The position numbers and the translations under genes were made by a program. 64,000 bases of DNA from Phaeosaccion multiseriatum (lineage: Eukaryota > Protista > Ochrophyta, other classes): positions 3,658,001 through 3,722,000 of the forward strand of contig OZ218953.1 of the NCBI GenBank assembly GCA_965112735.1. The letters run 5' to 3'. Positions within the stretch are counted from its first letter, which is position 1, and each line of letters begins with the position of its first letter. This document shows positions 8,723-56,476 of the stretch, piece after piece. The notes below the pieces were generated by a model. The model had not been told where the DNA came from, did not search any database, and saw only the letters and a program-made list of their open reading frames with translations.

Positions 8723-9903
8723 ATCAACAACTCCTGAAGCTGTTGCTCCTGCTCCTGCTCCATCTCCATCCGCATGGCCGCCAGCTGCTGCGCGAACTGC
8801 GTGGCGGATGCCTCATACAGGGCCTGCGCCTCTTGCCTGCCCGCTGCGGCTCTGGTCAGCCGCTGCTGCAGGTCTTCGGCCTTCCTGCTCGACTGATCCC
8901 TTTCCGCCCGCACGTCGTCGAGCTCGTCCCTCTTCATCTCCAGTTGCAGCTTGAGCTCCTCCATCTCCGCTTCCTGCTGCTGCTGCAGCTGCTCCTCCTG
9001 TTGTTGTTGCTGCTGCTGCTGCTCAGCCCCATCGTCTTGCAGGGTGTCATCTTCCACCTCGTCTCCCGCTGCGTCCGTCTTGTCCTCCTCCTCCCCCTGC
9101 CCCTCTTTGCGACTTTTCCGGCTCTCACTGAGTTGCGTCTGCAGCAGCGACACTGTCTCTGTGAGGCTCTTTTGCCTCGCCTCCGCCAACTCCCGCTCCT
9201 CCGCGAGGGCGAGCTTCCACGCCTCGACTTCCCTCACTCTCCGCTCCTCGCTCTCCTCAAGCTCTGCCCTCTGCCGCGCATTGTCTTCCTCGGCGGCCTC
9301 GAGCCTTTCTCTGAGCGCGGCAAGCTCCTCCTCCTTGTCCTCCAGCTCAAGCTCCCTCCCGCGGATATGGGCAACGAGCTTTTGAATCTGTGGCTCCATC
9401 TTCGCAACTGCAGCCTGGTTCTCCTCCTTCAGTTCCGCCACCCTCCTTTTCAGGAGCGACACCTGTTTCCGCTTGCCTTCCACCACCTTGCCATGCTCGC
9501 GTTGGAGCTTTTGCATCTTCTCTGACAGCTCAGAGGCGGCATCTGCGGGGGGTGCTCGACCTTCCCCCTCCGCCGCCGCCTCCTCCTGCCCTTCCTCCTC
9601 TCCTTTGTCCTCTCTCAAAGAGGCCGAATGCTCATGACCCTCCTCCTCCTCCTCCTCCCCCCCCTCCTTATCATCACCGTCATCATCATAAACACTACTA
9701 CTACCACTACTACCCTCTCCCTCCTCCTCTAGAACCCTGCCATCCTCATCCTCGCTCCCAAATATCTCCTCTCCCTCGCTGTCATAGCTTCGATCCGCAG
9801 CGCCTTCGTCAAGCGCCTCAAGTAGCTGCGAGCCCCGCGTCACCGCCTGGTTGACCGCCTGGTTGACGATGCCACCTGTGGCTTGAGCCAGGCGCCCAAA
9901 CAT
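4263..9903 (-). CDS. Golgin-84/CASP/giantin-type tail-anchored long coiled-coil protein (~1,770 aa)
   Basis: Two exons (9903-7819, 7496-4263) are joined by a phase-0 GT-AG intron. The protein is an E/Q/L/A/R-rich heptad sequence ending in a TM segment WAVLLGYAGVVHLLLLYELVF with the Tyr and His typical of TMD golgins. The N-terminal LLEALDEGAA resembles the golgin-84 N-terminal motif. Confidence 0.75.
5941..6645 (-). repeat. Coding tandem repeat, 252-nt (84-aa) unit, ~2.8 near-identical copies
   Basis: The anchor TCAGCACATCGTCGTGGGTC recurs at 6101, 6353 and 6605. Confidence 0.95.
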
Positions 9904-37900: not shown

Positions 37901-40084
37901 CCCCTTCGCCTTCCCCTTCCCCTTTCCCGTCCCCTTCAGACGGACGAACCTCTTTGTGCGCCTTCGAGAACATGAGCGCCAGCCACAGAAACAGCGGAGA
38001 CGCGAACATGAGCCTTGTGCCGGACGTGCTCCTCTGCGCTTTGAGGAACTTGTCACTGACCCTCTCCCTCTCCTCCCTCTCCTGCTCCTCCCTCTCCCTA
38101 TCCTCCTCATCCTCCTGCTTCTTCTTCTCGACCTTCTGATCCTTCCCGCTGCTGCTGCTACTACTGCTACTGCTGCTACCACTGCTGCTACTACTGCTGC
38201 CAAGCAACAAGGCAGGCATGAACAACAGCGCTCCTCCGCATACGCAGGGCAGCAGCAGCGCGAAGACAATGGAGAAGCTCGTGTTGAGGAAGAGGTTCTT
38301 GGCGTAGTACGTCCACGCCTCCGCCCCGTACAGCTCGTCACCCGACTCTACCACGTTGTATTTGATAATGTTGAGGGTGGGGGAGGTGGTTCTACCGTAG
38401 AAGGCGCTGTCTGTGTGGGTCGTCGCCAGCAGGAGGCCCGCCAGAGACGCCACGGCGAAGACGACGGTTTTGGCCGCCGCCGGAATGCCCCCCTCCTATT
38501 GTATGGTGTATTATGATGTGTTAGGCGGTGGGTGGGCGGAACAAGGTGAAGAAATACGGTACACAGAGAGAGTGGTAGTAAGCACGAAACGAGGCACTGG
38601 GAGTGATTGATGGCAGTGGATGGCCTATGGGGAGGGGCATAATAAGAAACGAAGAGGTAGCGCGGATGGTTAGTCGCTGCAGCAGCTTCCATGGAAGGAG
38701 AAGCCTTCCACCGACCGCAGAAGAAAACAACGCATCACTTTGAGCCTTTGCTATCGCCTTCTCACCTTTTGCATCCTGTTGTGAAGGCAGTCAACCGCCA
38801 GGGGCACGAAGAGGACAGCCACAAAGGGCCACGCCAGCCCGGTCACAGCCACCACTGCATATGTCAAGGCCGTTCATTGCAGAGGGGTGTCCAGGGTACG
38901 GACAGACGGGGACGGGTAAGAGAGCACCGCAGGTTTTCGTTGAGTTAATGCGAAGGGCGAAGGGGCCAGACATGCATGAGGAAGGACCACAAGCAAGCAA
39001 ACAGACAAACAAGACAGTCACCGAACGGGGCCTCCCTCCTGTGTGCCCCACCCCACCCCCACGCACGCACTTACGTCCCAGGAAGATGGCCGAGTGCCAC
39101 TGCCGCTTGAGCCAGGCCGCGTACACAAAGAGCACGAGGATCATTGCGGTGGAGGAGGGCAGCAACGCGCTCGAGGAGGTGAACATGCCTGCCGACATGG
39201 AGGACAGCAGCAGGAACACGCCGCCCACACGCCGGTTGAAGCGGAAGGTCAGGCCCTGGTACAATCGCAGCTCGCCCACGGCACACACCACAGCCCAGAA
39301 CATCTTGACGCCCAGCCACACCTGGGGGCAGGGCAGGGCAGGGCAGGTGCAGGCAGAGGAGGGGCAGGGGAAGGGCAGGGGGAGGGGGAGGAGGAGCTTT
39401 AGCACTGCTTCTCCGAGGTCTGTGCGGATTGTTTGTGTCGCTTCCGATGAGCAAGTGATGTGTTGTGTACATGAGAGGAAGAGTCTGTTCTTGTGCAGCC
39501 CACGCCCCCCCCCCTCCCTTGAGCCGGGCGTCCTCCTGGCGTCCCCTGCAGCCCAACATCACCTGCGTCTTGTCTCCCTCGAAGCCGACAAAAGCGAGAA
39601 CCGCCTGGCAGGCCTTGGCGACGAAGAGCGAGGGCATGAGGTAGGCGTAGCTGCGAAGGGCGTACTCGGGAGCTGAGGGGGAGGGGAGAGGCAGAGGCAT
39701 GGCATGCGCGCGGGTAGGCAGCCCGACGAGGCTGTCAGAGGTCGGGTCGTCTCTCGGCCTGTACGCTCCTCGCTACCCCCCCTGCTTCTCTCACTTCTTC
39801 TCACCATACTCCCAAGTCTGCTGCCCGAAGCCGTAGAGGAGGTAGTGTAGAGGCTCCCAGTAGTTGTACACCTCGTCGCAGTCGTCCACACACGTGCACC
39901 GCGCGGCCAACACGCGCACCACCAGCAGGAAGACGAAGGCGACGAAAGGGGCGGGGGCCCACACCATCAGAGAGGTGCGCTGGGTGGTAACCTGCTGCTC
40001 GTCAGTGTCCTCCTGCTCTTCTCGCGGCGACACTTGCACAGCCACTTTCGGCCGACCTCTCTCCGAAGCCTTTTTCTTCCCCAT
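34986..40084 (-). CDS. ALG9: Alpha-1,2-mannosyltransferase ALG9 (GT22), multi-exon
   Basis: Motifs DCDEVYNYWEPLHYLLYGFGQQTWEY-APEYALRSYAY, GMFTSSSALLPSS, LNIIKYNV...ELYGAE, HKEERFLYPVYP, CVGGEWFRFPSSFFLP, F.GQLPQPF, FNDQNKEE.SRY...CDYVV and RSFFVP occur in order. ATG at 40084. Confidence 0.96.
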
Positions 40085-40434
40085 AGTTGAACGCAGGGAA
40101 GGGAGAGGAGGCCGAGGAGGCGCAAGAAGAGAAATTGGTGATTGGTGCCTAAAGATTGAAAAGATTGGCCTTCCACTGCCATCTACTACCCGACCGCCGT
40201 CGGATTGGATTGGCGTTTTCTGAGAGCGCGGGATGCCCTTTATGTTAACGTTGCTTGGCTCTTGCTCTTGACAAGGGTAGTAGATGTCAACGACAGACAT
40301 TGTGTTTGATAGCATGAGAGAGGATCGAAGCGTGCAAGAGATGCGCTTTCGAGAAGAGGTGGTATTAAGATGAAAGAGGGGGAAAGGGGGAAAGGAAATA
40401 GCTGAGGCACGGAAGGCTTCAATCCTGAAGAAGC
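40085..40434. promoter_or_regulatory. Short divergent promoter region, ALG9 / giant EH-ARM gene
   Basis: Head-to-head ATGs 350 nt apart; inferred from geometry. Confidence 0.5.
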
Positions 40435-43400
40435 ATGGGTTCCTCAGGGAGTACACTGAGCTTCGACCGCCTGCAAACTCTCACTAGCCATGAGCTGGCA
40501 GAAGAGGTGAGTGAATGATGAAGGCTCGATCGAGTCAATCAGACGAAGCGCTCCACAGGGGGATCTCGCCTCCCTCGCTCTCCGCCCACCCCCCCCTTGG
40601 TTCGTTCGCTCACCACCCTGCCCCTTCCAGATGGTGGCCGAGCTCGGGGAGGAGTGGAGAATGTACGAGCCCGTCATCGCCACGGCCTGCATCTCCGGCT
40701 CAGTCATCGCCGAGCTCAGCCCGGGCGACCTGCGAGTGTTCCTCAACAGCGTCGGAGTCACCTTTTTGCCCCACTTAGAGACTCTGGACCGTATCGTGCA
40801 GAAGCTTCGGACGGAGAAAGAGGAGTCACGAGCACACCTGCTAACCACGGGGTCTCCGTTCTCCTTCCGAACCGTGAGGGCCTTGAAGACGCATCATCTG
40901 GCGTACGTGTGTCACCACGAGCGGGAAGGGGAGCAGCGGCAGGGGCACGGGGCGGCAGGAGAGACGCAGCGGAAGCTCAGCTTGACGGCGGCAGCTGTGG
41001 CAGCCGCCGCGGCCCCACCTTCCGTCACGCCTCCCCTCCCCTCTCAGCTGCACTTGCTTGAGCTGGGCGGTGAGGAGCTGCACTTGGCCTCGCCATCCTC
41101 GACAGCCGAAAGCGGCCAAGGAGGAGGAGGGGGAGGGGCAGGAGAGGTTGTGACGGAGGAAGACGGGGGAAAGACCTCCTGGTTCGCCGCCAACTCCTTC
41201 GCTACCAAGCTCCAGCAGCAGAGCTCGAGGGTGTGGCAGGTGCCACGAGACACTCGCCTGAGCGTGTACCTCAGACCGAAGCTAGGAGCGCTCTCCACCC
41301 CCCCTGCCTCTGCTCCTGGTGCCCCGCCTTCTAGTGGTGGCGGAGGCCTTTCGAGGGGGCAGATGGAGCGATTCCTAGTGCAGCTGCGAAGGTCCCTCAA
41401 CGTGTGCGTGTTGGTGGACAGCGGCGCCCCCACCGACCCGCAAGTGCTCATCGAATGCTACGAGGCATGCGCACACGGCATTAATGCCATCCCAGTGCGG
41501 CTCAGGGGGCCAGGGCAGAGGGAGATTCGCGACTGGCTACCCTGGACCCTCGGGGGCGGGGGACTCAATGAGAAGGAGGAGGAGGAGAAGGCGCAGCGGA
41601 GACTGGCCGCGGATGCCCTGGCTGCTTCCCGGGGGGGGCAGCAGCAGCAGCAGCAGCAGGAGGAGGAGGAGGAGGAGGAGGAGAGCGAAGAGGCAGAGCA
41701 GCTGCGCTTCTTTTGGAAGCAGTACGCGCTCACCATCCCGTGCGGCACCCGTATCGTGCTGCACCAGCTTGGCTACCCGGTGAAGGACTGTGTGGCAGCG
41801 GTGCGGCACGTGCTCTCCAAAGCCCCCATGGACTTTGACGTTACGCTGGATGACGACGCCCTCCGTTCACAACTCTCTCTATTACTGCAGGCAGATTATA
41901 AGGTCAATGCTATGGCTGCCAAGGCGGTGGGGGGGGGCGTATCTCTGAAATGGGCTGTGCGTCAGCCTCCCTCCGCGGCTGCGGGAGGGGGCGGGGGCGG
42001 CCGCCAGAGGGGGGGAAGGGGGGGGAGCGGGGAGGGAGCGGTCGGGGCGGCAGGGGCCGGCGCGTTCGAGGACGTGGTGCCCATTCGGACGAGGCAGGAG
42101 GTGCTCGATCTCATCAAGAAGGAACAGGTGGGTGGAGGCACACGGGGAGGACGGGGGAGAGAGGGAGGGAGGAAGGGAGGCATAGCGCTCCTCTGAGAAT
42201 GCCAGGACAGAATCCATCCCACTCCTTTCATTAGCTTCAGACAAAGGCCTCTACCCCCCCCCCCGCCCCTCAACCCCCACACTCTGTCCCCCAACTCTGC
42301 CCCCCTCCCCCCCTTCCCCTCCCCCCCTTCTCCTCCCCCCCTTCCCCTCCCCCCTCCCCCCTCCCTTTCATCAGCTGGACATAACGCGGCTGTCTCGCTC
42401 CATCGTGACTCGCATGCGCCGCGTCGAGGTGTCGTGTGACAGACAGTGGCAGGGGGCAAGGGAGCTTGCACTGCTGGCGGGGAGGGACAGAGAGGCCAGA
42501 GATGCGCTGGGCAGAGAGGGGGCTGTCAAGGCCCTCGTCAGGGCATCCATGAGGTGGGGAGAGGAGGGATGGCAGTGGACGGCAATGGATGGAAGGGAGG
42601 GAGGGAGGGACGGACGGGGAGAGGGAAAGAGTATAGCAATTCCTTTCCCGGGCATGCGTCGCTGTCCGTCCATGGGTGCTTCTGCCTTACTGCCTCTACC
42701 TTTCCCGTACACCTCTGCCTGACTGCCTTTGCCTGTGTGTCTCTGTCTGCAGGTTCCCGGCGGACGAGGACGTCCAGAAATGGACGTGCCAGGTGAGAAG
42801 GTGGGGCGTGAGTGGAGTGCGTGCGCGCGTGCGTGCGTTATAGAGAGAGGGGATGCATCTGTGAGAGACCGTTCGCCTTCCTTCCTTCCTTCCTTCCTTC
42901 CTTCCTTTCTTTCTTCTTTCCTTCTTTCCTTCCTTCCTTCCTTCCTTCCTTCCTTCCTTCCTTCCTTCCTTCCTTCCTTCCTTCCACCCATCGATCCATC
43001 CTTCCTTTCCCTCCTTTCATCCTCCACGGAAGAGAACAAACCGTGTCGTGTTCGCATCCCAGAGAGTGAGCCCGCCCGGTCTTTTTGCTCCCTGACCCCT
43101 CACCGATGGCACCCTGCGGTCCCGACCTACTCCCCCCATACCACCCCACTCACTGACGCAGGCCATCGCGGAGCTTGCCCGTGACCCCGAGTGGCGCCAG
43201 GCGCTGATCGAAGAAGGAGCCGTGGCTGCCGTCATGAACGGCTTCTCCCTGCTGCAGGTCCAGCAGCGACGAGCAAGTATTTTGCTTCTTGGGGGGGGAG
43301 GTAGTGGCAACTTGGCGAGGGGAAGAGGCAGTGCAGGCAGGCAACAGTGCAAGCTGGCAAGACTGCTGTGGAAGGCCATCATCCTGCCGCAGGTTGAGAG

Positions 43401-46400
43401 GTCTAGGGAGAGGGTGGAGGTGATAAAGAGGAGAGAGGAGGCGCTGCTCGAGAAGCTAAGGAGGGAGGAGGAGAGGGAGCAAGCACAGGCCGATAAGGAC
43501 ATTGTTCAGGAGATGGACAAGGAGTTGAAGGGGACGGCGGAGGGGGGGGGGGGGGGAGATGGGAGCGAGAGCGGAGAGGGCAGCGACGGTGATGAAGACG
43601 AGGATGAAGAGGAGGATGGAGAGGAGGAAGAGGAGCGAGAGGAGGGAGCCAAGAGCAAGGGTGGCCACGATGGCCACGATGATGAGCACGGCGAAGACAA
43701 AGAGGTGAGTGGCAGGAGCTCAGCTTCAAGACCTCCTGAGGCCTCCCGAGGCCTCCCTCACAAGAAAACGCGTCTGTCCCTGGCTCTCACCCTCGTCGCC
43801 CCACACCCGCCCCTTGGCAGCAGGAGAGGAAGCACAAGAGTGCAGAGGAGATCGAGCGTGCCCAGCGAGAGAGGGAGGAGAAGGCCCGTGCAGACGCGGA
43901 GGAGAAGAAGAGACGCAAGGCGCAAGAGGAGGCCGACCGTAAAGCACGCGAGGAAGCGGAGCTGGAGGCAGCCAGGAGAGCCATTCTAGAGGACCAGAGG
44001 AGGTAAGTAATGTTACGTGTATTGAGAGGCCGGGGGGGGGGGAGAATGCAAACTACGACCCCACCAGGGGTAGAGGTGAGGGGGGAAAGCTTACGTACTG
44101 GGATGACTCCACTCCAGCCCCCACATCCCCCCCGTTGATCGCCTTGCCTAAACTCCCTCTCTCTCTGTCTGTCTGTCTCTCTGTCTCTCTCTGTCCCTTG
44201 CAGGAACGAGGAGGAAAACGAGCGACAGGCCGAGCTGGAGAGGAAGGAGCTCGAGAGGAAGGATGCAGAGGCCCTGGCTCTGGCGTGGGACATGAACAAC
44301 GCCGACAGGAGCGCTTACGACAAGGCCTTCGCCAAGCTCGACAAGGACAAGAGGCTCAAGCTCAGCAGGTTCGTCTTTCGATCGGTTGCTGAGCCGTCGG
44401 TCGGTCGGCCGGCAGAGAGTGGGAAGATGAGAGAAGAAAAGCATCCGGGGGTTTGTTACAAAGAGGAGGAGTAGGGGCGTCTACTGCCATCCCGACATAC
44501 TGTCATTGACATACAATGCACCCCCAACCCCCACAGGAAAGAGGCTCAGCCGTTCCTGGCCCGTGCGGGAGAAAGCATGTGCGAGGGGGATGTGCTCGCG
44601 GCCTGGGAGCTTGCGGATCTCAGCGGCGATGATGTGAGTGCCAGTTTCAGGGCCAATATCCCTGCCAGTTGCACTTGCCTTTGCCGTTGCCGCTCTGAGC
44701 GGTGCTCTCATGTGCCCTTTGATCGATTCCATATTTCCAATTTCAGCTCTTGGAGCTTGGCTTGTTCGTTGCCCTCGTGGGCATCGTGATAAGTGAGCTG
44801 AGCTTTGCAGAAGGGGTATTGGGGGGGGGCGGGCTGGTACATGGACAGACAGACGCGTTTGAGAACATTCCTTATTCATCGTTTCAAAAGTTCCTTATCA
44901 CTTTTTCTAACTCGACCACCAACATCTGCTGCCATCTCTACCATCTGCTGTCATCTGCCCGCAGGCGTTGGACCCCGACGAGTTCCGTATCTGCTTCCAC
45001 CTTATCCGAAACGTCACCAAGCGGGGTCTGGAGCTGCCCGTAGCGCTGCCGCCCAACCTCTACCCAAGGGGCTGGCACGGCAAGAGAGGGCACAAGAGGC
45101 TTCGTAAGACGGCGGCAGAGCTGGCCAAGGAGGAGGAGGAGGGGGAGGAGGGGGAGGAGGGGGAGAAGGGGGAGAAGGGGGAGAAGGAGGGGGGAAAGAC
45201 GAAGCGTAAGGAGAGGAAGGCCAAGGATAAAGAGGGAAAGAGCAAGGAGGGCAAGAGCAGCGGGCAGGCGGAGGACAAGCACGAGAGAGAAGGAGGAGAG
45301 GCCAAAGAGAAGAAAAAGGCCGAGAAGAACAAGGCTGAAAAGAAGAAGACGGTCGAGAAGACTAGCGTCGAAAAGAAGAAGGTCGACAAGAAGAAGCACA
45401 AGAAGAAAGGTATGTCCGAGGAGGAGTCCAACGCCTACGCCATGAGCTCCAAGGAGAGGCAGGCCTACAAGGCAGTCTTCACCCGCCTTGACAAGGACGG
45501 CAGAGGCGCTCTCTCCAGTCAGGAAGCGGCGGCGGCACTGCTCAAGAGCGGTTTGTCCAAGGACAAGCTCAGGCAGGTGTGGGGCCTCTGCTTAGCCGTA
45601 CCACGGGCTGGGGGAGGAGGGGGGGAACTGGAGGAGGAGGGGTTTTGCGTGGCGTTTCATCTCATCGTGTGCGCCACCAAGAAGGGGCTTGATGTGCCTG
45701 CGGTGCTGCCTCCGAGCTTGGGGGGGGTGGGGGTGGGGAAGGGGAAGGAGGAGGAGGAGGGGGGAGAGGGGGGAGGGGAGGCGGGGGAGGGTGCGAGCAG
45801 CAAGGAGAAGCGAAAGAAGAACAAGAAGAAGCACGACGAAGGCACAGGGAAAGCAGAGGCAGGACCGACCGACAGCAAGGGCCAGCAAGGCAAAAGTAAG
45901 TCCGAGAGCGCGAAGGACAAGGACAAGGGCAAAGATATTGAAGCTCCGGCGGCGGGCACAGGGGAAACCGTCGTCGCAAAGACTGAGAAGAAAGGGTTCT
46001 GGGGAAGGAAGAAGGGCGGCGGCGAAGCAGTTGGTGATACAGCAACAGGGAGCAAGACCGGGAAGGCTGGGAAGAAAAGGAAGCTTCCTTCTGGCAGCAC
46101 TGGGGCCGAAGGGGAAGTGGGAGCAGCAGCGGATGCGGCAGCAGCAGCGGATGCGGCCGAGGGAGACAAGCACGAGCACAAAAAGAAGAAGAAGAATACC
46201 GACAAGGGCAAGGACAAGGGCAAGGGTAAGGGCCCCAGCACAGGCACTGACACTGGCCCCGGCCCTGGCTTGGGTAAGGGCGCAACGCCCAGCGACGAGG
46301 CCTACGCCCTGCGGGACGGAGATAAGGAAAAGTACAGAGAGGTCAGTCAGTGAGGGCAGGGGGGAGGCGCGGGGGGGGTATTCGGTGTGACTAGCTGCCG

Positions 46401-48722
46401 TTCGACTGCCTAACTATCGAGTGGCCAACACCTGTCGAATGTATGACCAACTGCCTCAGATCTTCTCGAAGCTGGACGTCGACAAGAGCGGCACCCTGTC
46501 CGGGACGGAAGTGGCGGGACTCTTACGTAAGAGCGCCATGGGGCAGGCAGATCTCAAGAAGGTCTGGCGACTCGCAGCAAGCAGCGGCACAGCAGGTAGC
46601 ACAGCAGCAGCTATCAAAGCAGTCGGCAACGGGGCTGCGAAGGAAGGAGAGGCGGAAGCGGCTGGGGCAGGGGCAGAGATGCAGGAGGAGCTGACGGAAG
46701 AGCAGTTTTGTACGGCGTTTCATTTGGTGATTTGCGCCACCAAGAAGGGACTGCCCGTGCCGCACCGTCTGCCGCACAGCTTGGGGGGAAAGCGGCACAA
46801 GGAGGGAAAGAAGAAGGAGAAAGGGGAGAGGAAAGAGAAGGGGGAGAAGGAGGACGCGAAGGAGGAGAAGAAGGACAGCGGCGATGGGAAGGGCGGGAAG
46901 GGAGGTCACTCGAGGAAGGAGGAGGAGGGTTTGAGCAAGAGCGGTGCCGCGGTTGGTGGTACAGCAGCAGAGACCTCACAGGCGCTGGTTGTCGCCAACC
47001 CTGCCGAGGGCGACAAGCCCACAGAAGACCCGACGGTAACCGCCATTGGTCTTGGGGTGAAGCAACCCGGCGGAGGTGAAGGGGAAGAAGAGACGGCAAT
47101 GGATGATATGGATGTGGAGGACGTGTTTGCCCTGAGCGACGAGCAGCGCTTCGAGTACGAGCTCAAGTTTGCAGAGGTTGATGCTGACGATAGCGGGCTC
47201 ATCAGCAAGGCCGAGGGGACACCGCTGCTCACACGCACTCTCCTCACACCACCCATCACTCCTGAGGCCGCCGCCGCCGCCGCTGCTGCTGCTGCTGCAA
47301 AGACCAAGGAAGAGGGCAGCAAGGCAAAGGCGAAAGAGGGGGGTACCAAGGTGGGGGGCTGGGTAGCGGGGCGGGCGGGGGGGAAGAACAAGGCCCAGGG
47401 GGACAACAAGGAGGCAGGAGCAACTGCCGCGGCTGCCGCGCCTGCACCCACTGAGGAAGACAGAAAAATGCTCAAACAGATATGGGTCCTCTCGGGTGCG
47501 TGTGCGCGTGTGTATGCGTGTGTGAGTATGTGTATGTACGTATGTGTGTGTGCTCGTGTGTATGAGTGTGTGAGTATGTGTGAGTATATGCGTGTTGTGT
47601 GTGTGTGTAGTGTCATTGCATTACTGAGGACGAGGCGAGGGCATATGGACACATGAACACATGAGCACATATGAATGAAGGGACAAACACAGTATCACTC
47701 ACCCCAGACGACCGATCAGGCGAGAAGAGTAGGCCTTGGACTCGACCCTACCCTTGTACATGTATCCACGCGTATACCTCCCTCCCCCTATCTCCCCCCG
47801 CTCCCCTACCTCCTAGCCTGTAACTCGAGCCCCGAACCTACCTCTCTTACCGTGTCTCCTCCTCCTCCTCCTCCTCCTCCTCCTCCTCCTCCTCCTCCTC
47901 CTCCTCCTCCTCCTCCTCCTCCTCCTCCTCCACAGACCGCGATCGCGATGGACAGCTCTCCCCCCCGGAGTGGGTGGCGGCCATGCACATGTGCCACTGC
48001 ATAAGTCAACAAAGGGCGCAGAAGCACCCCAACAACGCCGTGGTGCCCGAGCGTCTACCCGAGTGCCTGGGAGGCCCACGGGCCAGAGGGGGCAAGCACA
48101 AGAAAGTGGGGGGGGGGCGAAAGAAGAGGAGACCCAAGTCTTCCAACCAGCCGAGAACGAACGCCGAGAAGGCGGCCGCCGCCTCCGAAGCCGCTGCAGA
48201 GGCACGCCGAGCAGCAGGAGCAATGCTTAAGGCCACGCGTGACTACCGATCGGGCAAGCTCGGGGCGGCTCGCTACTACATGGTGCTGGTGGACGCGTTT
48301 GGGGATCGCAAGATCGAGGTCATGAGGACCAAGGTGCTGCGGGGCATCCCTATGGATCGGGCCATGCGTCTCATCAAGGCGGCGGGCTTAGGGCCCGAGC
48401 TCACTCAGGAGCTGAGGCGTGAGAGAGCAGAGATGGAGGAGGACCTCATTGCTGAGCGGGAGGCACGCAGAGCGCAGGTGAGCCTTTTGTGCGTTTGTGC
48501 GTGAGGGATAAAGGGAGGAAGGAAGGGAGGGAGGGAGGGAGGGAGGGAGGGAGGAAGGGAGGGAGGGAGGAAGGGAGGAAGGAAGGGAGGAAGGGAGGGA
48601 GGGAGAGACGGCAAGAAGTGGGCCAGGGCAGGGGCAGGGGGCGGGGCGGGTGGGAGCGTGTTCTTCCCTGGCTTCTTGTCTTACTTACCGTTTCTGTGAC
48701 GTCATAGCTGCCCCCCTCGCAG

Positions 48723-48809
<87 letters not shown>

Positions 48810-49951
48810 GTCTACCCACCAGTCTGCTTGCCTGCCTGTCTACCTGCCTGTCTACCTTCCTGCCTGCCTGCCTGACGATCCCTCCCCCCCTCTTTCCCCT
48901 CCTTCCTCAGGTGACGCAAAAGAGCTCCACCAGCGGCGCCGCCCTCCGTGAGGTGTTGCAGTGGGCTTGCCTTGCCGCGGGCAGAATGGTGTTCAACGCC
49001 GGGGCCGACAACAGCCTAGGCCTCGCCAGCTTTGTCTCCGCGGGGCTCAGCGCGAGCCTCGGGAGCGTTCTTAGAAGCTTCCACGACCGGGACATTGAGC
49101 TTGCCCTGGCCGCTGTGGGTGCGTGCGCGGTGGTACTTCGCAGCCTTAGCGAGTCGCACCCCCAGAGCCTGGACTCGCAATTTGACACGACACATGCCGG
49201 AAGTGTATTGTCCAGCTCCCTCTCGCTGGACCACGGATGGGGCAGTGAGGCATTTGCGCCCTTTGAGGCCCCAGGATTTCTGCGCGCATTGGTGGAGTTT
49301 GCGGACTCCGCTCCGGGGTGTGTGATTGTGCAGAAGCACTGCTTCGGGGTTGTGGCGGACCTCTGCAAGAGGAAGGAGGCAAACAGGTGCGAGGGGAAGA
49401 GAGGGAAAGAAAGAGGCACGACAGAGAGCGTGTATGTATGTATGTATGTATGTATATATATATATATATGTGTGTGTGTGTTTGTGAGTGTGGGCTTGTG
49501 CGTCCGCGTGTGTGCCCGTGTTAGTCAGCGTCAGCATCTCTACTTCGAGCGGGGAGGAGCTGGACAGCCTTTGTGCGTTGCGTCGCCTTACGCCCACCGA
49601 CTCCCTCACTTGCCCCCCGCCTTCCTTCTCTCCACCTGGTGCGCGCACACACACACACGCACACACACACATACACACACACGCACACACACACACGCAC
49701 ACACACACACGCACACACACACGCGCACACACACACGCGCACATACTCACTGGCCTCCTCCCCAGGCACCTGCTCGCTAACTCTGTGGAAGGGCTTGTGC
49801 GCGGCCTCGCCATGGGACACCGTACAGATGACCTCGACCTGCAGGCAAGGGCATATTGGCACATACGCACGCGCTTGCTTTGATTCTCAAACTCTTTTGC
49901 ATTCACCCTCACCCTCACCGTCACCCTCACCCTCACCGTCACCCTCACTCT

Positions 49952-49984
<33 letters not shown>

Positions 49985-49987
49985 CGT

Positions 49988-50078
<91 letters not shown>

Positions 50079-50079
50079 T

Positions 50080-50128
<49 letters not shown>

Positions 50129-50161
50129 CGTCACCCTCACTCTCACCCTCATCCTCACCGT

Positions 50162-50224
<63 letters not shown>

Positions 50225-50271
50225 CCAGACCCTCACCCTCACCCTCACCCAGACCCTCACCCTCATCCTCG

Positions 50272-50334
<63 letters not shown>

Positions 50335-50385
50335 TCACCCAGACCCTCACCCTCACCCTCACCCAGACCCTCACCCTCATCCTCG

Positions 50386-50420
<35 letters not shown>

Positions 50421-53400
50421 CCCCTCATCCTCACCCTCACCCTCGCCCTCACCCTCACCCTGAGCCTGAGCCTGACCCTCACCCTGAGCCTGACCTTCAC
50501 CCTGAGCCTGACTCTGCCCCCCTCCCCTGCCCCCTGCCGCCCCCCCCTCCCCAGTTGGTGTGCTGTCAGTCTCTCTGCAGCTTGGCTGAAGCCCCCGGTA
50601 TTGCGCGTCGTCTGGCCCAAGCCCCATTCCAAGCCACATCAGGAGGAGGAGCTTCATTATCAGATTCAGGCTCAGTCGCCTCGAACACGACCACCCCCAC
50701 CTCGTTGTTGTCTCTGTCAGCGGTGCCCGCCCTGTTCCGCGCCATGCGTTCCCGACCCCGTGAGCACGACATTATTCTGGACTGCCTCACCGCACTGCAC
50801 CTCATCGGCAAAGCCTACCCCACCGTCTGGAGAGAGATGAAAGACAACGAAAACCCCCATCCGCACCCGCAGCCGTACCCGTTCCCGTCGGAGGGATCGA
50901 AAAGACCACACTCGAGGAGCAGCGGAGCGAGCTTGGGGTCGGACGCGGTGACCTTTGGGTCCTCTAGGCAACAGGAGCTGCCCGCCCTCCCTGTGACCGA
51001 GTCGGCGCTGGAGGCTCTGTTGGGGGCACTCAATGTGTTCGGGGCGGATCGGGCAGTCACCGCACTCGCGGCGGAGGTGTTCGCGGGGGTGGTGGAGGGT
51101 TCCGTCCGGGAAGTTGAAGTTGAAGTAGTGGATGGACAGCCGTTACAGCCGCCGCCGCGTTCGTCGCCGTCGGAGTCGGGGGCAGGAGGGGCAGAGGAGG
51201 CAGAGCAGGTGAGAGGGGAAGGGGAAGCAGAAGTTCTCCACGTCCATGGGCCTTCTCTTCCTCCTCCTCCTCCTCCTCCACGCACGGCCTGGGTGACTTG
51301 CCTGGATGTGCTGGACGCGTATGAGTGCGCGCGTTTGGTGGTAAGGGTTTTGAGGGCCAACCCCAACAATGCCCAAGTTCAGCAGGCCGGGTTGGCGGCA
51401 GGGACGGCGCTGCTTGCGGCAGAGGCAGTGATTGAGGATCAGAGAGAGAGAGAGCGGGTGGAGGCGGAGGTGGAAGGGGAGGGGGATCAGTGGAGTGATG
51501 TGGACGAAGAAGAAGAAGAAGAAGAAGAAGATGATGATGAGGAGGAGGGGGAGGAGGAGGGAGGCGCGGGGCAAGCAGAGGGAGGACGAAAAGACGACAA
51601 AAGAAGACGTCCGTCCTCCCGATCAAGCTCCCGACCAGGTTCCAGACACAGCGCCACCTCCAGCGCCACCGGTACCTCGGAGAGAGGCGACGGCACCGCT
51701 CAACAATGGGAAGCGGAACAAGTGGAAGCAGGCTTCGGCTCGGAGCTGACACGCGCAGGCTTCTGCGAGCTCCTGCCGGGCATCTTGCACGCCTTCCCTA
51801 GGCACAGAGAGCTTCGATTGGCCACGGTGCGCTGCATGGGGGCCCTTGCGCATGTTGGGAAGGGCCACGGCTTGGCCAGTGGGGAGGAGGCCTTGCAACG
51901 CATTGTGGACAGCGGAGGGTGTGAGCAGGTGCGTGCGTGTGTGCGTGTGTGCGTGCGTGTGCGTGTGTGTGCGTGTGTGTGTGCGTGTGTGTGTAAAGCT
52001 CATTGAACATGTGTGTGTGTGTGTGTGTGTGTGGCAATCCCGCCCCATCCTCTGCATACCCTTCCCCCCCCCCCTCCCTCCCTGCCACCGACCCACTGCC
52101 ATCCACTGCCATCCATCGCCTCCTCATCGCAGGTGGTGAAAGTGGCAAAGGCCTTCTCTCTGGACTGCGAGGCGGTGATGGTGTGCCTCTCCACCCTCTG
52201 TATCCTCTGCGAGGAGGGCGGGGAGGAGGCAGTGCGACACTTTGGCGCCGCAAAGGGCTGTCAACTTGTCTTCGATGGGCCTTATTACTTTCCTGACAGC
52301 CGAGACATGGCGCTTCAGGCGTGTCGAGCGGTGAGGGCATTGGCCTCGGGTACCGGTGGGCCCTCCCTCCTTAACAGAAGGCAGCTCGTGGACCTGGGCT
52401 GCTGTCAAGAGCTAGTGCTGACGGTGCGGGACTGGGGGGGGGACTTGGAACTGCAAACTTGCGCGCTGAGGGCCGTGAGGGCATTGTTTGAGGCTGGGGC
52501 AGGGCAGCCGAACGTCACGGCTATTGCCAGCACGTCCACAGCCAACACCGCACAGGAAGGGGCGGGGGGTGGGGGAGGCGGGGGAGGGGCCAAGGACCGG
52601 GCGGGGCAGATCATCGTCAAGACCTTGCTGTATTGGATGGATCTGGTGCCAGCGAAGCAGAGAAGGAGTAGGAGGTTGCGACGACGAGTCCACGCATCGG
52701 AGAAGGAGGAGGTGAAGGAGGAGGAAGAGGAAGAAGACTCTTTGGAAGAGCTGCTGCAAGAGGGCTGCCTCTGCCTGAGTCTAATCCTGCAGCACCCGTC
52801 CCCCCTCGTGTGGAAGTTCTGGGGCAATGCGTGGGGTGTGTCGCCCTCCGGGGTGGTGGGCATCAAGGCCGTGTCCGAGTCATTGGTGAGGGCCATGCGG
52901 AGACAAAGGGCCAACGGAGCACTGCAGCTCGCCGCCTGTCGGGCATTGACTTGCATTGCCAGGGACAGCAACAGTCGCCTCGTGGTGGGGCAGAGCGGAG
53001 GCTGCGACGCGGTGTTGCTCGCCTTGGGGGACTTACCGCACTCGGCTGCACTTCAGGAGACGGGGTGGCTGGCGGTGTCTTCGCTGGCGGCGCTGAGCGG
53101 CTTCAATCGCATCGTTCTCGGAGCCTTCCCTCCCGTCCCCTCCTCCTCCCCCTCCTCTTCTTGTGCTTGTCTTGATAGTGCTGTCGAATCTGAGGCGGAC
53201 TCCTCGTCGGACTGCTTCTCTTTGCTTGTGCAAGCGTGGAGGCTCTTCTCCTCCCGCCAGGGCGTTCAACGAAGTTGTTGCATGGCCTGCGCAAACCTCT
53301 GCAGCGATGGAGATCCGTCGGACAACACGCACAAGCTCGTCAAGGCAGGGGTACTTCCTCTGCTGGTGCGCTCTCTGGAACTCTTCCCTAATTGCGAGGA

Positions 53401-54932
53401 CCTGACCTGCGCTGCTTTGACGAGCCTGGCCAAGGTGGCGGTGGGTGGGTATAGGGGAAGGGTGTGGGACACGCCCTGCACGCTCCTTCGGTCGCCTGAC
53501 GGGCACGGGCACCAGCCGAAGAAGAACCAACGGCCACAGCAAGAAAGGCAGGGGCAGGGACAGGGGCAAGGGCCGGGCAGCCAAGGAGGAGGAGGAGGAC
53601 TCGCGGCTACATCCCTCGTATCATTTCGTGGTGCTGCTCCCCCGCACCACGCTCACCGCCACTCCCACTCCCACCATGCCATGGGAGGCAACGGTGACAT
53701 GTCGTGGGCGGTGGTGCGTGTGATGGAGCTGTGGGGTCGGGACCTGGACATACAGCACTGGGCCTGTGCGGTGTTGAGGGAGCTCTCGGCTCGCTCGGAG
53801 AACATTCCCACACTCGAGGACGCGGGGGCCATCACCGCCATAATCGGACTTCTTGCCACACTCACGGGGCAGGAGGAGGGAGGAGGAGATCCCTTTGGCA
53901 GCGGAGGTACAGGCGACACGGGGAGGGGACAGGCTGCTGTTGCTGCTGCTGCTGCTGCTGCAGGTGGTGCTGTTGCTGGTGGTGGTGGTGGTGAGGAGGC
54001 AAGTCGAGAAGGGGGCAGGAAGCGCGCCCTCATGTATCAGGCCGCCGCCTGTCTCCTTAGCGTGAGTCAGGGACTCATTGCGAGGCGGCGCTTGGTGCAG
54101 GAGGGGGCAGGCTTTTCTGTGGTGCTACTCATGGCCACGGATGTGAGTGACGTGGCGCTTCAGCGGCTCGGACTGGCGTGTCTGGCCAGTCTGGGGGCAC
54201 AGAACGAGGACAATCGCATGAGGCTCGCGGAACACGCGGAGGAGACCGCCGAGGTGCTTGTGGCTGCCCTGCGCGCCCACCGGGGGGACCCGAGGGTGGA
54301 GGAGGACGGCGCGCTGGCGGTGAGCAACTTGAGTGCCGTGAGGAAGGAGGCGGTGGCGCTGGTGGAGGTGGGGTGTGTGGCGGTCTTGTTGGACTCGTTA
54401 GGGGCAAGGGCGGCGGCGAGGGAGGCCAGGGACGGGGGCGAGTGTCCCATGCAGCAGTTTCAGATTTTGCAGCAGATACGCAGGCAGCACGTGGACCATC
54501 ATCAGAGACAGCAGCATCGGGGGGGGAACGGCAGTGGACGGCACCACAGCACAAGCAGCGGCGGTGTTGGACACAGTGAGGAAGTGTTGTGCGTGTACGC
54601 GCAGGGGGGCAACAACAACGACGAGGACGTGGTACGCATGAAGCAGCAGCGGACAGACATTGCCACCCTCACCAGTTTACTGTACGGACTCGGAAACCTT
54701 GTGCGTGTCAGCAAGGAGAGCGCCGACGAGGTGGTGCTGAAGGGCGGCTGCGAGGCGATGGTCAAGGCCATCCGAAGCTACCCGCACGACCTCGGTCTAC
54801 AGGAGGCGGGCTGTAGGGCCATAGCAGCTGTCGCCGAGGTGGGTCCGGTGGGATGGCAGTGGATGGGGGGCGAGCGAGATCGCGAAGGAGGGTAGGGTCG
54901 CGTGGGTGCCTGCTGAACGAGACTCCCGCTGT

Positions 54933-54963
<31 letters not shown>

Positions 54964-56062
54964 TTCTTTCACACCGCGATGGCCGGCTTGCCTTGACTTG
55001 AGCTAAGCTAGAGGAACAAGGCAGCTGGGTCTGTCTGACTGGGCTGGAAGGCGCCACTACCCCGGGGCCTTCCGCCACCAACCCTACCCCCCCCCCCTAC
55101 CCACCACTCACGACGCACATCTCCTCCTCCTCCTCCTCCCGCAGAGCTCGGACCGCAACCGCAGAACAGCAGGCTCTGTGGCTGGTGGCTGTGACGTGAC
55201 AATGCGCGCCTTCGGCTTCTTCCGCCGCGATGAAGACGTGCAACAAGCCGCGCTTGCCAGCATTGAGGCCCTCGCGGAGGGAGAGGGGGAGGGGGGAAGG
55301 GCCAACAGGCAGCTCCTCTGGACCATGAACGCACTGCCGCTCTTGCACCATACGGTACGGAGGGAGGAGGAAGGAGAGGGGAGGGAGGAGGGAGGAGGGC
55401 GGCAGCAGTGGGTTGTGTGCAACAGAAAGCTCGGAGGGTGTGCATACGCCTTGTTTGAGGCTCACTCTGGACTGTATTTCCGTCCGTGTCTCTTTCTATC
55501 TTTCTCCCTCTCTTTCTCTCTCTCGCTCTCTCTCTCCCTCTCTGACTGACTCTCTCTCTGGTCGGTGCCTATACATACATTCTCTCTCTCTCTGCTCTCT
55601 CAGCTGGACCTGTTCCGCGATGAGTCATCAGTGGTGGTGAAGGCTCTGTCCGTGCTGCGCTGTCTGCTCGCCGACGAGCACCACTGCCCCTCCCACTCCA
55701 TCACCACCCTCCCCAGCACCAGCAGCAGCAGCAACGACATGAACAACAACACTAACAACAGCAAGAGCAACGCGGGCCTCAGCGGCATCAGTCGGGAGAA
55801 GGCCATGGCCCGGCACATCGGAGCCGTGTTGGTCATCATGGAGAAGAATCAGAGCCGCGAGGTGGTCATGGCCTGCCTCGACACGCTGCACGACCTCCTC
55901 GATGTTCCCCTTGGCAAGGGGGCCCTCCTCCTGCCCGCGCCTCTAGAGAGCCGTAGTAGCAGCAGCAGCAGTGTGTCCCTGCCGTCCCTACCGCAAGTCG
56001 ACTCCCCTCCACCGGCGGCCCGCTCGTCCATGCACCGTGGCTCCTCCACGACGGCAATGAGT

Positions 56063-56096
<34 letters not shown>

Positions 56097-56476
56097 CTAG
56101 CAGTAGTGGTAGCCTAAATGTCCGTAGTGAGAATGGCAAGCCCCCCTCGGAGACGCGAAGGCCGAGCCGGAACGGGCTGCTGACCGGGCTGGCAGGGAGT
56201 CGTAGGGGCAGTCAAGAGCTGCCGCCGCCCCCAGGTGGAGGAGGAGACGCACATGAGAAGCAAGAGCAGGGGCAGGAGGGTCAGGAGGGTCAGGAGGGGC
56301 AGGAGGGGCAGGGAGAAGGGAAGGAGGCGCAGGGCACTATTGTACAGAGAGTGCTGGCGGCCAATGTCTCTTACGCAGTCAGAAGGGTCCTCAAATTCCA
56401 CCCAAAGGACAGGGACATGGCGGTGCTCTGCAAGAGGGTGGATAGGTACGTCAACACGACGCCCGTCTTGGTATGA
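40435..56476 (+). CDS. Giant multidomain protein (~3,800 aa, ~17 exons): N-myristoylation motif, SAM-like, TIR-like, ARM repeats, coiled coil, four EH (Eps15-homology) domains, long ARM-repeat C-terminal region
   Basis: Exon 1 40435-40506 (MGSSGS...) splices to 40631-42127. Later exons start at 42375, 42753, 43162, ~43821, 44204, 44537, 44964, 46460, 47935, 48911, 49766, 50555, 52133, 55145 and 55604, and the frames join. EH signatures Y...F..LD.D..G.LS, L..VW.L and F..AFHL....K.G..VP..LP..L occur four times. ARM signatures such as D..LQ..AC.AL..LA and GGC..V recur. The SAM and TIR calls are pattern-based. Confidence 0.8.
49903..50512. repeat. Intronic (CCCTCA)n / (TGAGGG)n telomere-variant hexamer array, ~100 units
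   Basis: Directly visible, with variants CCGTCA, CTCTCA, CCCAGA and CCCTGA. It lies in the intron 49845-50554. Confidence 0.95.

Follow-up and report, generated by a model that had tools for sequence, protein, structure and literature searches.

The Gene at 40435 to 56476 and Its First Exons

We analysed 64,000 nt of forward-strand DNA (the window) from Phaeosaccion multiseriatum (assembly GCA_965112735.1, contig OZ218953.1, positions 3,658,001-3,722,000); coordinates below are those of the window unless a relative is named. The DNA is GC-rich (~0.6) and eukaryotic, with short GT-AG introns and many microsatellites. As judged from the sequence, the plus strand from 40435 to 56476 is one long gene that codes for a giant scaffold protein. 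With a probability of about 0.6, this gene joins a myristoylation signal, one SAM domain, a divergent TIR domain with its glutamate, ARM-like repeats, a coiled coil, four EH domains and an ARM solenoid of the LRRK2 type. The exons and motifs, the gene family, the SAM fold of the model, the conserved Glu, the EH and ARM_LRRK2 matches, the colinearity and the splice phases were established directly. We read the parts themselves as known and the domain layout as new.

The features of the gene are collected in Table 1. An original prediction, made from this DNA, had placed the start of the gene in a short first exon encoding MGSSGS. The ATG, the donor, the acceptor and the in-frame splice to exon 2 all agreed with this, and every motif that the prediction had listed was found in the translation of exon 2. 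The GC content of intron 1 was level over the codon positions (0.62/0.66/0.61), unlike that of the exons. The conserved parts of the candidate TIR region were of the coding type, with a GC content of 0.76-0.82 at third codon positions versus 0.36-0.51 at second positions.

Table 1. Features of the predicted gene in the window; residue numbers are those of exon 2.
Feature	Position	Strand	Remarks
Exon 1	40435..40506	+	72 nt, 24 codons from ATG 40435; MGSSGS (G2, S6) and first SAM helix
Intron 1	40507..40630	+	124 nt; GTGAGT donor at 40507, pyrimidine tract, CAG acceptor ending at 40630
Exon 2	40631..42127	+	1497 nt, 499 codons, in frame with exon 1; donor GTGGGT at 42128
SAM body	40631..40849	+	residues 1-73
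Linker GSPFSF..ALKTHH and candidate TIR betaA (HLAYVCHH)	40850..40918	+	aligns with GSPYTF..HNAAYITFTK of the orthologues
Low-complexity insert 1	40919..41170	+	residues 97-180; orthologues lack it; model confidence <50; no plausible internal intron
Candidate TIR alphaA and betaB (LSVYL)	41171..41287	+	aligns with exon B of eight loci (FRGATKFAKSLR...VTVRLRG)
Insert 2, at the BB-loop position	41288..41350	+	residues 220-240; model confidence <50
Candidate TIR alphaB-betaC-alphaC-betaD core	41351..41545	+	most conserved block of the family
Glu275 codon	41453..41455	+	residue 275; position of the TIR catalytic glutamate
Insert 3, E/Q-rich	41546..41689	+	residues 306-353; variable and long at this position in all family members
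Candidate TIR alphaD-alphaE	41690..41827	+	conserved DAFYxQL..LPK..ELHRNRFxVxDVIAAVRxCF; model confidence 84-91
Family motif, end of exon 2	42074..42127	+	matches VPWRTxEExxELIxxE in all orthologues
Exon 3, first ARM-like repeat	42375..42553	+	found by tblastn just 3' of the TIR exon in seven contigs
Exons 4-5 with the intervening intron	42753..43706	+	ARM-like repeat, then E/K-rich coiled coil; limits by eye
Four EH domains	44205..48100	+	several exons, K/E/G-rich linkers between
ARM/HEAT solenoid exons	48890..56476	+	to stop codon 56474-56476

The Gene Family in Brown Algae

Relatives of the gene were sought with exon 2. In an exhaustive phmmer search, residues 1-94 were matched by six short proteins (E 3e-7 to 1e-5) and residues 249-398 by two (E 5e-5 and 7e-4), and a profile search added nine further family members. 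No match was returned by a word-indexed protein search with exon 2, and no confirmed relative by a scan of the JGI metagenomes with the family profile. One candidate, P0006, was rejected because its match was confined to low-complexity sequence. The relatives were called as genes in prokaryote style, on eukaryotic contigs that carry no annotation, and one 90% cluster includes a real gene model, P0139 of Undaria pinnatifida (735 residues, JGI). The contigs and loci fetched for them are numbered L001 to L010; a single Undaria-type sequence stands under both L004 and L005. The orthologues were ~30% identical to the window protein, which is the most divergent member of the family; at this identity to brown-algal proteins, the source organism is a distant relative of the brown algae. 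The motifs of the original prediction coincided with the conserved blocks of the family alignment. These results indicate that the predicted gene is conserved, with the same order of parts, in brown algae (U. pinnatifida and relatives). With its domain broken up by introns and low-complexity loops, the family escapes standard annotation, and similar genes have probably been missed elsewhere.

The relatives split the head of the gene into four exons, 1, A, B and C, and the window merges A to C into one. Their exon 1 has the pattern MGxxxS..W.DVRDM.P.ELA, and exon A carries the SAM body followed by GSPYTF..HNAAYITFTK. Exon B reads EGDTFRGATKFAKSLR...VTVRLRG...GPLL.E. Exon C starts with VA.SLNV.WLLS.GSL.DP.CLMEVCAAVRQG.PV.P.RL.G.G...LPIW, passes through a long variable loop and ends with D.FY.QL...LPK...ELHRNRF.V.DVIAAVR.CF ... 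VPWRT.EE..ELI..E.AE.DDLA. Two strongly conserved motifs, WNWE..P....AG+.R and VPWRT.EE..ELI..E.AE.DDLAG, lie between the TIR domain and the ARM repeats in the family, and the window retains only the second, in a weaker form. In the Undaria model P0139, exon A runs straight into exon C at residues 118-125, and the 50 residues of exon B (alphaA/betaB) are missing. The genomic locus L004 does contain a conserved exon B (9548-9697), and its omission from the model is an annotation error by which part of the candidate TIR domain is lost. L008 and L009 are contigs from sister runs with gene copies ~85% alike, and their introns are both fewer and shorter than those of the Undaria-type loci.

The first exon was compared with the rule for N-myristoylation, that is, a Met-Gly start, a small or uncharged residue 3 and Ser, Thr, Ala, Gly, Cys or Asn at position 6. 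The predicted consensus with Gly2 and Ser6 stood as a motif, and MGxxxS was retained in all four species in which a first exon could be found (MGSSGS in the window, MGNSVS in L002, MGATAS in L004/Undaria and MGAATS in L003). These exons sit upstream of exon A in L002, L003 and L004, and one also heads the Undaria model P0139. The window protein and its relatives thus carry a putative N-myristoylation signal that agrees with the rule.

Joining of the Head to the EH and ARM Exons

One alternative would assign the SAM/TIR exons to one gene and the ARM/EH exons to a syntenic neighbour, with no common transcript. The frame of exon 2 stays open for 22 codons beyond the proposed donor, up to a TGA at 42194-42196, and the limits of the downstream exons were set by eye, which would both suit two genes. 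The joining of the two parts was considered in the relatives. By tblastn with window exons, the order SAM/TIR, ARM-like exon, coiled coil, EH and ARM solenoid was colinear and on the same strand in six loci (L002, L003, L004, L007, L008 and L009), and in L008 everything from TIR exon B to the LRRK2-type solenoid lies in this order within 11 kb. Exon 3 was found in L001-L005, L007 and L010 (E 3e-7 to 1e-5). Conservation of exon C stopped exactly at ..DDLA followed by a G|GTRAG-type donor of phase 1 in 8/8 loci, with no conserved stop codon there. The next conserved exon began at an AG acceptor 2 nt before LL[VIA]K, also of phase 1, in 6/6 loci. The Undaria model P0139, which lacks exon B and is truncated, covers both parts, joining exon 1 (MGATAS), SAM, TIR exon C, ARM, coiled coil and the start of the first EH domain. 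Within 42128-44968, no exon with a start codon was evident in the window. Two separate genes are therefore highly improbable. Because the exon order is conserved in six loci, the splice sites are phase-matched and the Undaria model spans the junction, we treat the region as one gene. The original prediction, which had been staked on the N-terminal exons belonging to the EH/ARM gene, appears correct on this point. The junction of exons 4 and 5 was confirmed by L002 and L008, in which the same sequence is contiguous, without an intron.

The downstream domains were examined by a Pfam scan, in which E values were corrected for all 24736 models. The EH model (PF12763) matched at ~45445-45711 (E 5e-12, 46.1 bits versus a cut-off of 22) and again from 46457 (E 1.4e-6, 28.6 bits). 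Introns split the first and the fourth EH domain; these two were recognised by eye, and Pfam gave no match on their pieces. ARM_LRRK2 (PF23744) matched at ~53183-53437 (E 5e-11, 42 bits versus a cut-off of 26.2). It also matched the orthologous solenoid of L008 (E 3e-10, 39.3 bits), which is tied to the window solenoid by tblastn. The ARM-like repeats right after the TIR domain are conserved, yet no Pfam model matched them. In the predicted series of ARM repeats, four EH domains and a long ARM solenoid, two EH domains and the solenoid are thus above the Pfam cut-offs, and the other two EH domains are assignments by eye.

The SAM Domain

The head of the protein was modelled with AlphaFold2 (AF2). 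On the single window sequence, the model was uninformative, with a predicted local distance difference test score (pLDDT) of 37. AF2 was also run on an alignment of the family, A4, whose rows were chosen so that MAFFT places the exon fragments correctly. This model had a mean pLDDT of 62, and its residues 1-75 reached ~80 and formed five helices. For residues 1-77, a fold search on the model returned almost nothing other than SAM domains, a second look at the structural matches agreed with this, and the language-model features of an orthologue pointed to SAM clusters (0.85). A bundle of five helices within ~65-70 residues is what is expected of a SAM domain. The Pfam models SAM_1 and SAM_2 gave no match in the window, in the exon A pieces of the orthologues or in the Undaria model. 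These results indicate that the head, as modelled, carries one SAM domain, and the SAM-like stretch of the original prediction is borne out by the fold search.

The Candidate TIR Domain

TIR-like elements had been predicted to follow the SAM stretch in the right order, interrupted by low-complexity inserts. The motifs and the Glu codon were found as predicted, and the position of betaB was corrected to LSVYL at residues 210-214, since the proposed SSRVW is the end of alphaA. The AF2 model on A4 has a helix at 178-202 and a strand at 210-214 in the alphaA/betaB region. In the core, it has helices at 242-254 and 270-281 and strands at 259-263 and 286-290. The residues S, L, N, D, P, L, E, A, G, P, R, L, G, G and W of the core were invariant in the family alignment A5. 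Glu275 lies at the start of alphaC, within D-P-x-x-L-x-E, and was invariant in 10/10 and 11/11 family sequences in two alignments. The prediction would not have survived the loss of this residue in the homologues.

The three inserts were also considered as unspliced introns. This was rejected: the inserts lack GT...AG pairs that could be used together with a pyrimidine tract, and each of the three would need a length divisible by three and no stop codon. In brown algae, two introns interrupt the TIR domain, one after ..TFTK and one after ..GPLL.E; by comparison with L002-L010, both have been lost from the window. Its low-complexity coding inserts at 40919-41170 and 41288-41350 lie within a few residues of these positions.

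The TIR assignment was examined by several searches. In the Pfam scan, TIR_2 was the sole family to match five orthologue pieces covering betaC-alphaC-betaD (E 0.0022, 0.0044, 0.0046, 0.049 and 0.17), and all five matches shared one register, at profile positions ~48-100 of 122. These pieces hold only ~40% of the domain, since introns split it. TIR had been named as the hypothesis beforehand, and the best match can therefore be read as a per-model P of ~1e-7 (0.0022/24736). In the Atlas feature search, the window gave a SARM1 SAM-TIR cluster first (0.88), and its ten best family-bearing matches all shared TIR. The orthologue P0014 gave TIR_2 and SARM1 clusters (0.80-0.81).

The reference TIR sequences comprised two E. 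coli proteins (TcpC and one other), 120 relatives of TcpC and 80 more TIR loci from bacteria, and the spliced family profile was aligned with them by hhalign. Against the TcpC TIR family, betaC fell on betaC, the Glu on the Glu of QYELD and LPIW on LPIWH. Against the second E. coli protein, Glu275 fell on the Glu of AHEID. The greedy alignment was colinear from AAYITFTKEGD, opposite YDFFISHAKEDKD, to the last helix, over 133 columns with 23% identity. It placed the candidate betaA on YDFFISHA of TcpC and paired the alphaD-alphaE block with the C-terminal helices of the TcpC TIR domain. In a second look at the structural matches, TIR entries made up 11 of 50 rows.

Several observations weigh against a TIR domain. 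The best TIR_2 score, 18.9 bits (E 0.0022), is below the gathering cut-off of 28 bits. Pfam gave no match on exon 2 of the window or its pieces, and no TIR_2 match on the exon B pieces (alphaA/betaB). PADLOC, NCBIfam and PDB sequence searches gave no TIR match; the PDB searches, made with a single sequence and two profiles, returned low-complexity noise as their sole matches. The hhalign alignments were not significant (P = 0.11-0.15), with a narrow reference set (effective number of sequences 2.3), and Foldseek against PDB gave no match below E 0.5; an Atlas shape search was uninformative. The AF2 model built the TIR part only partially: of the five parallel strands that alternate with helices in a flavodoxin-like TIR fold, betaA (pLDDT ~42) and betaE were not modelled as strands. 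Many sites that are near-invariant in the family are also altered in the window protein (CLMEVC to VLIECY, WLLS to VLVD and LPIW to IRDW).

An alternative is a domain that is not a TIR, namely a lineage-specific Rossmann-like alpha/beta domain with local likeness to TIR_2, which would make the gene an Eps15/Ede1-like scaffold with a SAM head. All sequence tests remained below curated thresholds, the structural TIR matches were weak and tied with other alpha/beta folds, and detectable similarity was limited to the betaC-betaD third of the domain. On the other hand, five separate orthologue pieces chose TIR_2 alone from the whole of Pfam in a constant register, and the language-model searches on two family members both yielded TIR families. 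Alignment with a genuine TIR family is colinear over the whole span betaA to alphaE and pairs Glu with Glu, and TIR chains were over-represented among the structural rows. We consider a domain outside the TIR group decidedly unlikely. In view of the TIR_2-only matches of the orthologues and the invariant Glu, set against the sub-threshold scores and the missing Pfam match in the window, the predicted TIR domain is probable, and we hold it with good confidence to be a TIR homologue.

A TIR homologue may also act as an adaptor or regulatory module only, as in animal Toll-like receptor (TLR) adaptors. The protein would then perform no chemistry on nicotinamide adenine dinucleotide (NAD+) and would be an endocytic or trafficking scaffold in which SAM and TIR merely drive assembly. 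This would suit a protein that is mostly scaffold (EH, coiled coil and ARM). The window protein has also lost many residues around the Glu that are near-invariant in the family, and long inserts lie in the AA, BB and DD loops; the BB loop shapes the active site in known TIR enzymes. However, the Glu and its Asp-Pro...Leu-x-Glu setting are kept in all 11 sequences over ~70% divergence, which fits selection on catalysis. The SAM domain beside the TIR domain is the arrangement of the enzyme SARM1, and the closest neighbours in feature space are SARM1 and TIR_2, not TLR-type TIR domains. A purely adaptor role is therefore unlikely in our view. That the domain is an active TIR enzyme may be suggested by its conserved residues, and we rate this lower than its homology to TIR domains.

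Comparison with Known Systems

The gene had been described in the original prediction as carrying a rearranged SARM1-like domain set. As in SARM1, C. elegans TIR-1 and Drosophila Ect4, a SAM domain directly precedes a TIR-type domain with a Glu, and ARM repeats are in the same protein. SARM1 was also the top language-model neighbour of the window. However, the algal protein has one SAM domain in place of the tandem pair, which in SARM1 forms an octamer ring, and the order ARM-SAM-SAM-TIR was not found: the algal ARM repeats follow the TIR domain, whereas those of SARM1 precede the SAM domains. A myristoylation signal stands in place of the mitochondrial targeting peptide of SARM1, and the algal gene has ~5 kb of extra coding sequence for the coiled coil, the EH domains and the LRRK2-type solenoid. 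HMMER against the solved SARM1 chains detected no sequence similarity. Because it has one SAM domain and its ARM repeats come after the TIR domain, the algal gene is not an orthologue of SARM1. The SARM1 label thus holds as a loose analogy, in which the SAM-then-TIR order and the ARM neighbour stand and the single SAM and the place of the ARM repeats do not. From that order and that neighbour, it is a fair hypothesis that the protein may work like SARM1.

Bacterial TIR_2 domains (PF13676), such as that of TcpC of E. coli, share betaC-alphaC-betaD with the algal domain in the profile register, with the algal Glu on the Glu of QYELD, and the algal betaA motif AAYITFTKEGD is colinear with YDFFISHAKEDKD. 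TcpC is an NAD+ hydrolase. The algal domain differs in its scores below the gathering cut-off, its long loop inserts and its fusion to eukaryotic scaffold domains. In the E. coli CFT073 reference (L012, 22764-25301), the serU island holds a compact trio of NAD/ADP-ribose genes: tcpC, then an opposite-strand gene for a 169-residue TIR-only protein and, after it, a gene with a macro domain.

In the haptophyte Gephyrocapsa huxleyi, genes with TIR domains have been linked to virus resistance (New Phytol 2025, PMC12489294). Their TIR domains keep the catalytic glutamate, some are structurally nearest to the SARM1 TIR domain, and the genes are stated to be without further domains, for instance nucleotide-binding sites or leucine-rich repeats (LRR) (PMC12489294). 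Like these, the candidate described here is a microalgal TIR domain with its glutamate kept. The two differ in that none of the G. huxleyi genes is reported with SAM, EH or ARM, and in lineage, a haptophyte versus a relative of the brown algae.

With Eps15, Ede1 and intersectin, the algal protein shares several EH domains that have EF-hand-like calcium loops and that a coiled coil and low-complexity linkers follow or separate. Those proteins lack SAM, TIR and an ARM solenoid, and the algal EH array lies in the middle of a much larger protein. The C-terminal solenoid resembles the N-terminal ARM region of LRRK2, being above the curated ARM_LRRK2 cut-off in both the window and L008. Unlike LRRK2, the algal gene has no Roc-COR, kinase or LRR, and the match spans ~85 residues of a much longer solenoid. 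No description of a TIR domain joined to EH domains, nor of TIR, EH and Eps15 together, was found in the literature searched, in agreement with the statement of the original prediction that such an architecture had not been seen described.

Possible Function at Endocytic Membranes

TIR domains are common executioner and signalling enzymes in bacterial, plant and animal immunity, and SARM1 is a SAM-TIR enzyme and a drug target in nerve degeneration. TIR enzymes need clustering to cleave NAD+ or to make nucleotide signals. In the algal protein, the myristoyl group would keep the head at the membrane, and self-association of the SAM domains would bring the TIR domains together. The ARM repeats next to the TIR domain may restrain it, and the EH domains could dock the protein on endocytic adaptors with NPF motifs. 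The combined effect would be a TIR signal or an NAD+ sink positioned at endocytic membranes. From the established roles of each domain, we infer that NAD-cleaving signalling may take place there. A lipid anchor, a SAM domain and a Glu-bearing TIR domain in one protein with four EH domains and an LRRK2-type solenoid would link TIR chemistry to endocytic membranes.

A bolder proposal is that brown algae and their relatives have a membrane-anchored, SARM1-like enzyme within the endocytic machinery. Clustering at EH-marked uptake sites would activate its TIR domain as an NADase or signal synthase, with the ARM repeats as a brake, and the enzyme would guard the entry of viruses or cargo. We regard this proposal as a long shot. 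If it is true, such a cell-autonomous guard would be a TIR immune layout without counterpart in animals, plants or bacteria. For the sensing and stopping of viruses in brown algae and their relatives, the gene offers a concrete candidate for testing.

Neighbouring Gene and Repeats

The region 39791-40456 on the minus strand contains the first coding exon of a mannosyltransferase-like gene of the ALG9/PIG-Z type (..CDEVYNYWEPLHYLLYGFGQQTWEY..), which is arranged head to head with the SAM-TIR gene. The start codons of the two genes are ~350 bp apart. With this divergent neighbour so close upstream, 40435 is a sensible gene start, and the arrangement suggests a bidirectional promoter shared by the two genes. 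Long microsatellites were found within the introns. Intron 4 contains (TTCC)n at 42860-42990, and ~1 kb of hexamer-type repeats at 49560-50560 reads as (PS)n, (HP)n or (GE)n, depending on the frame. These intronic microsatellites give rise to long spurious open reading frames on both strands.

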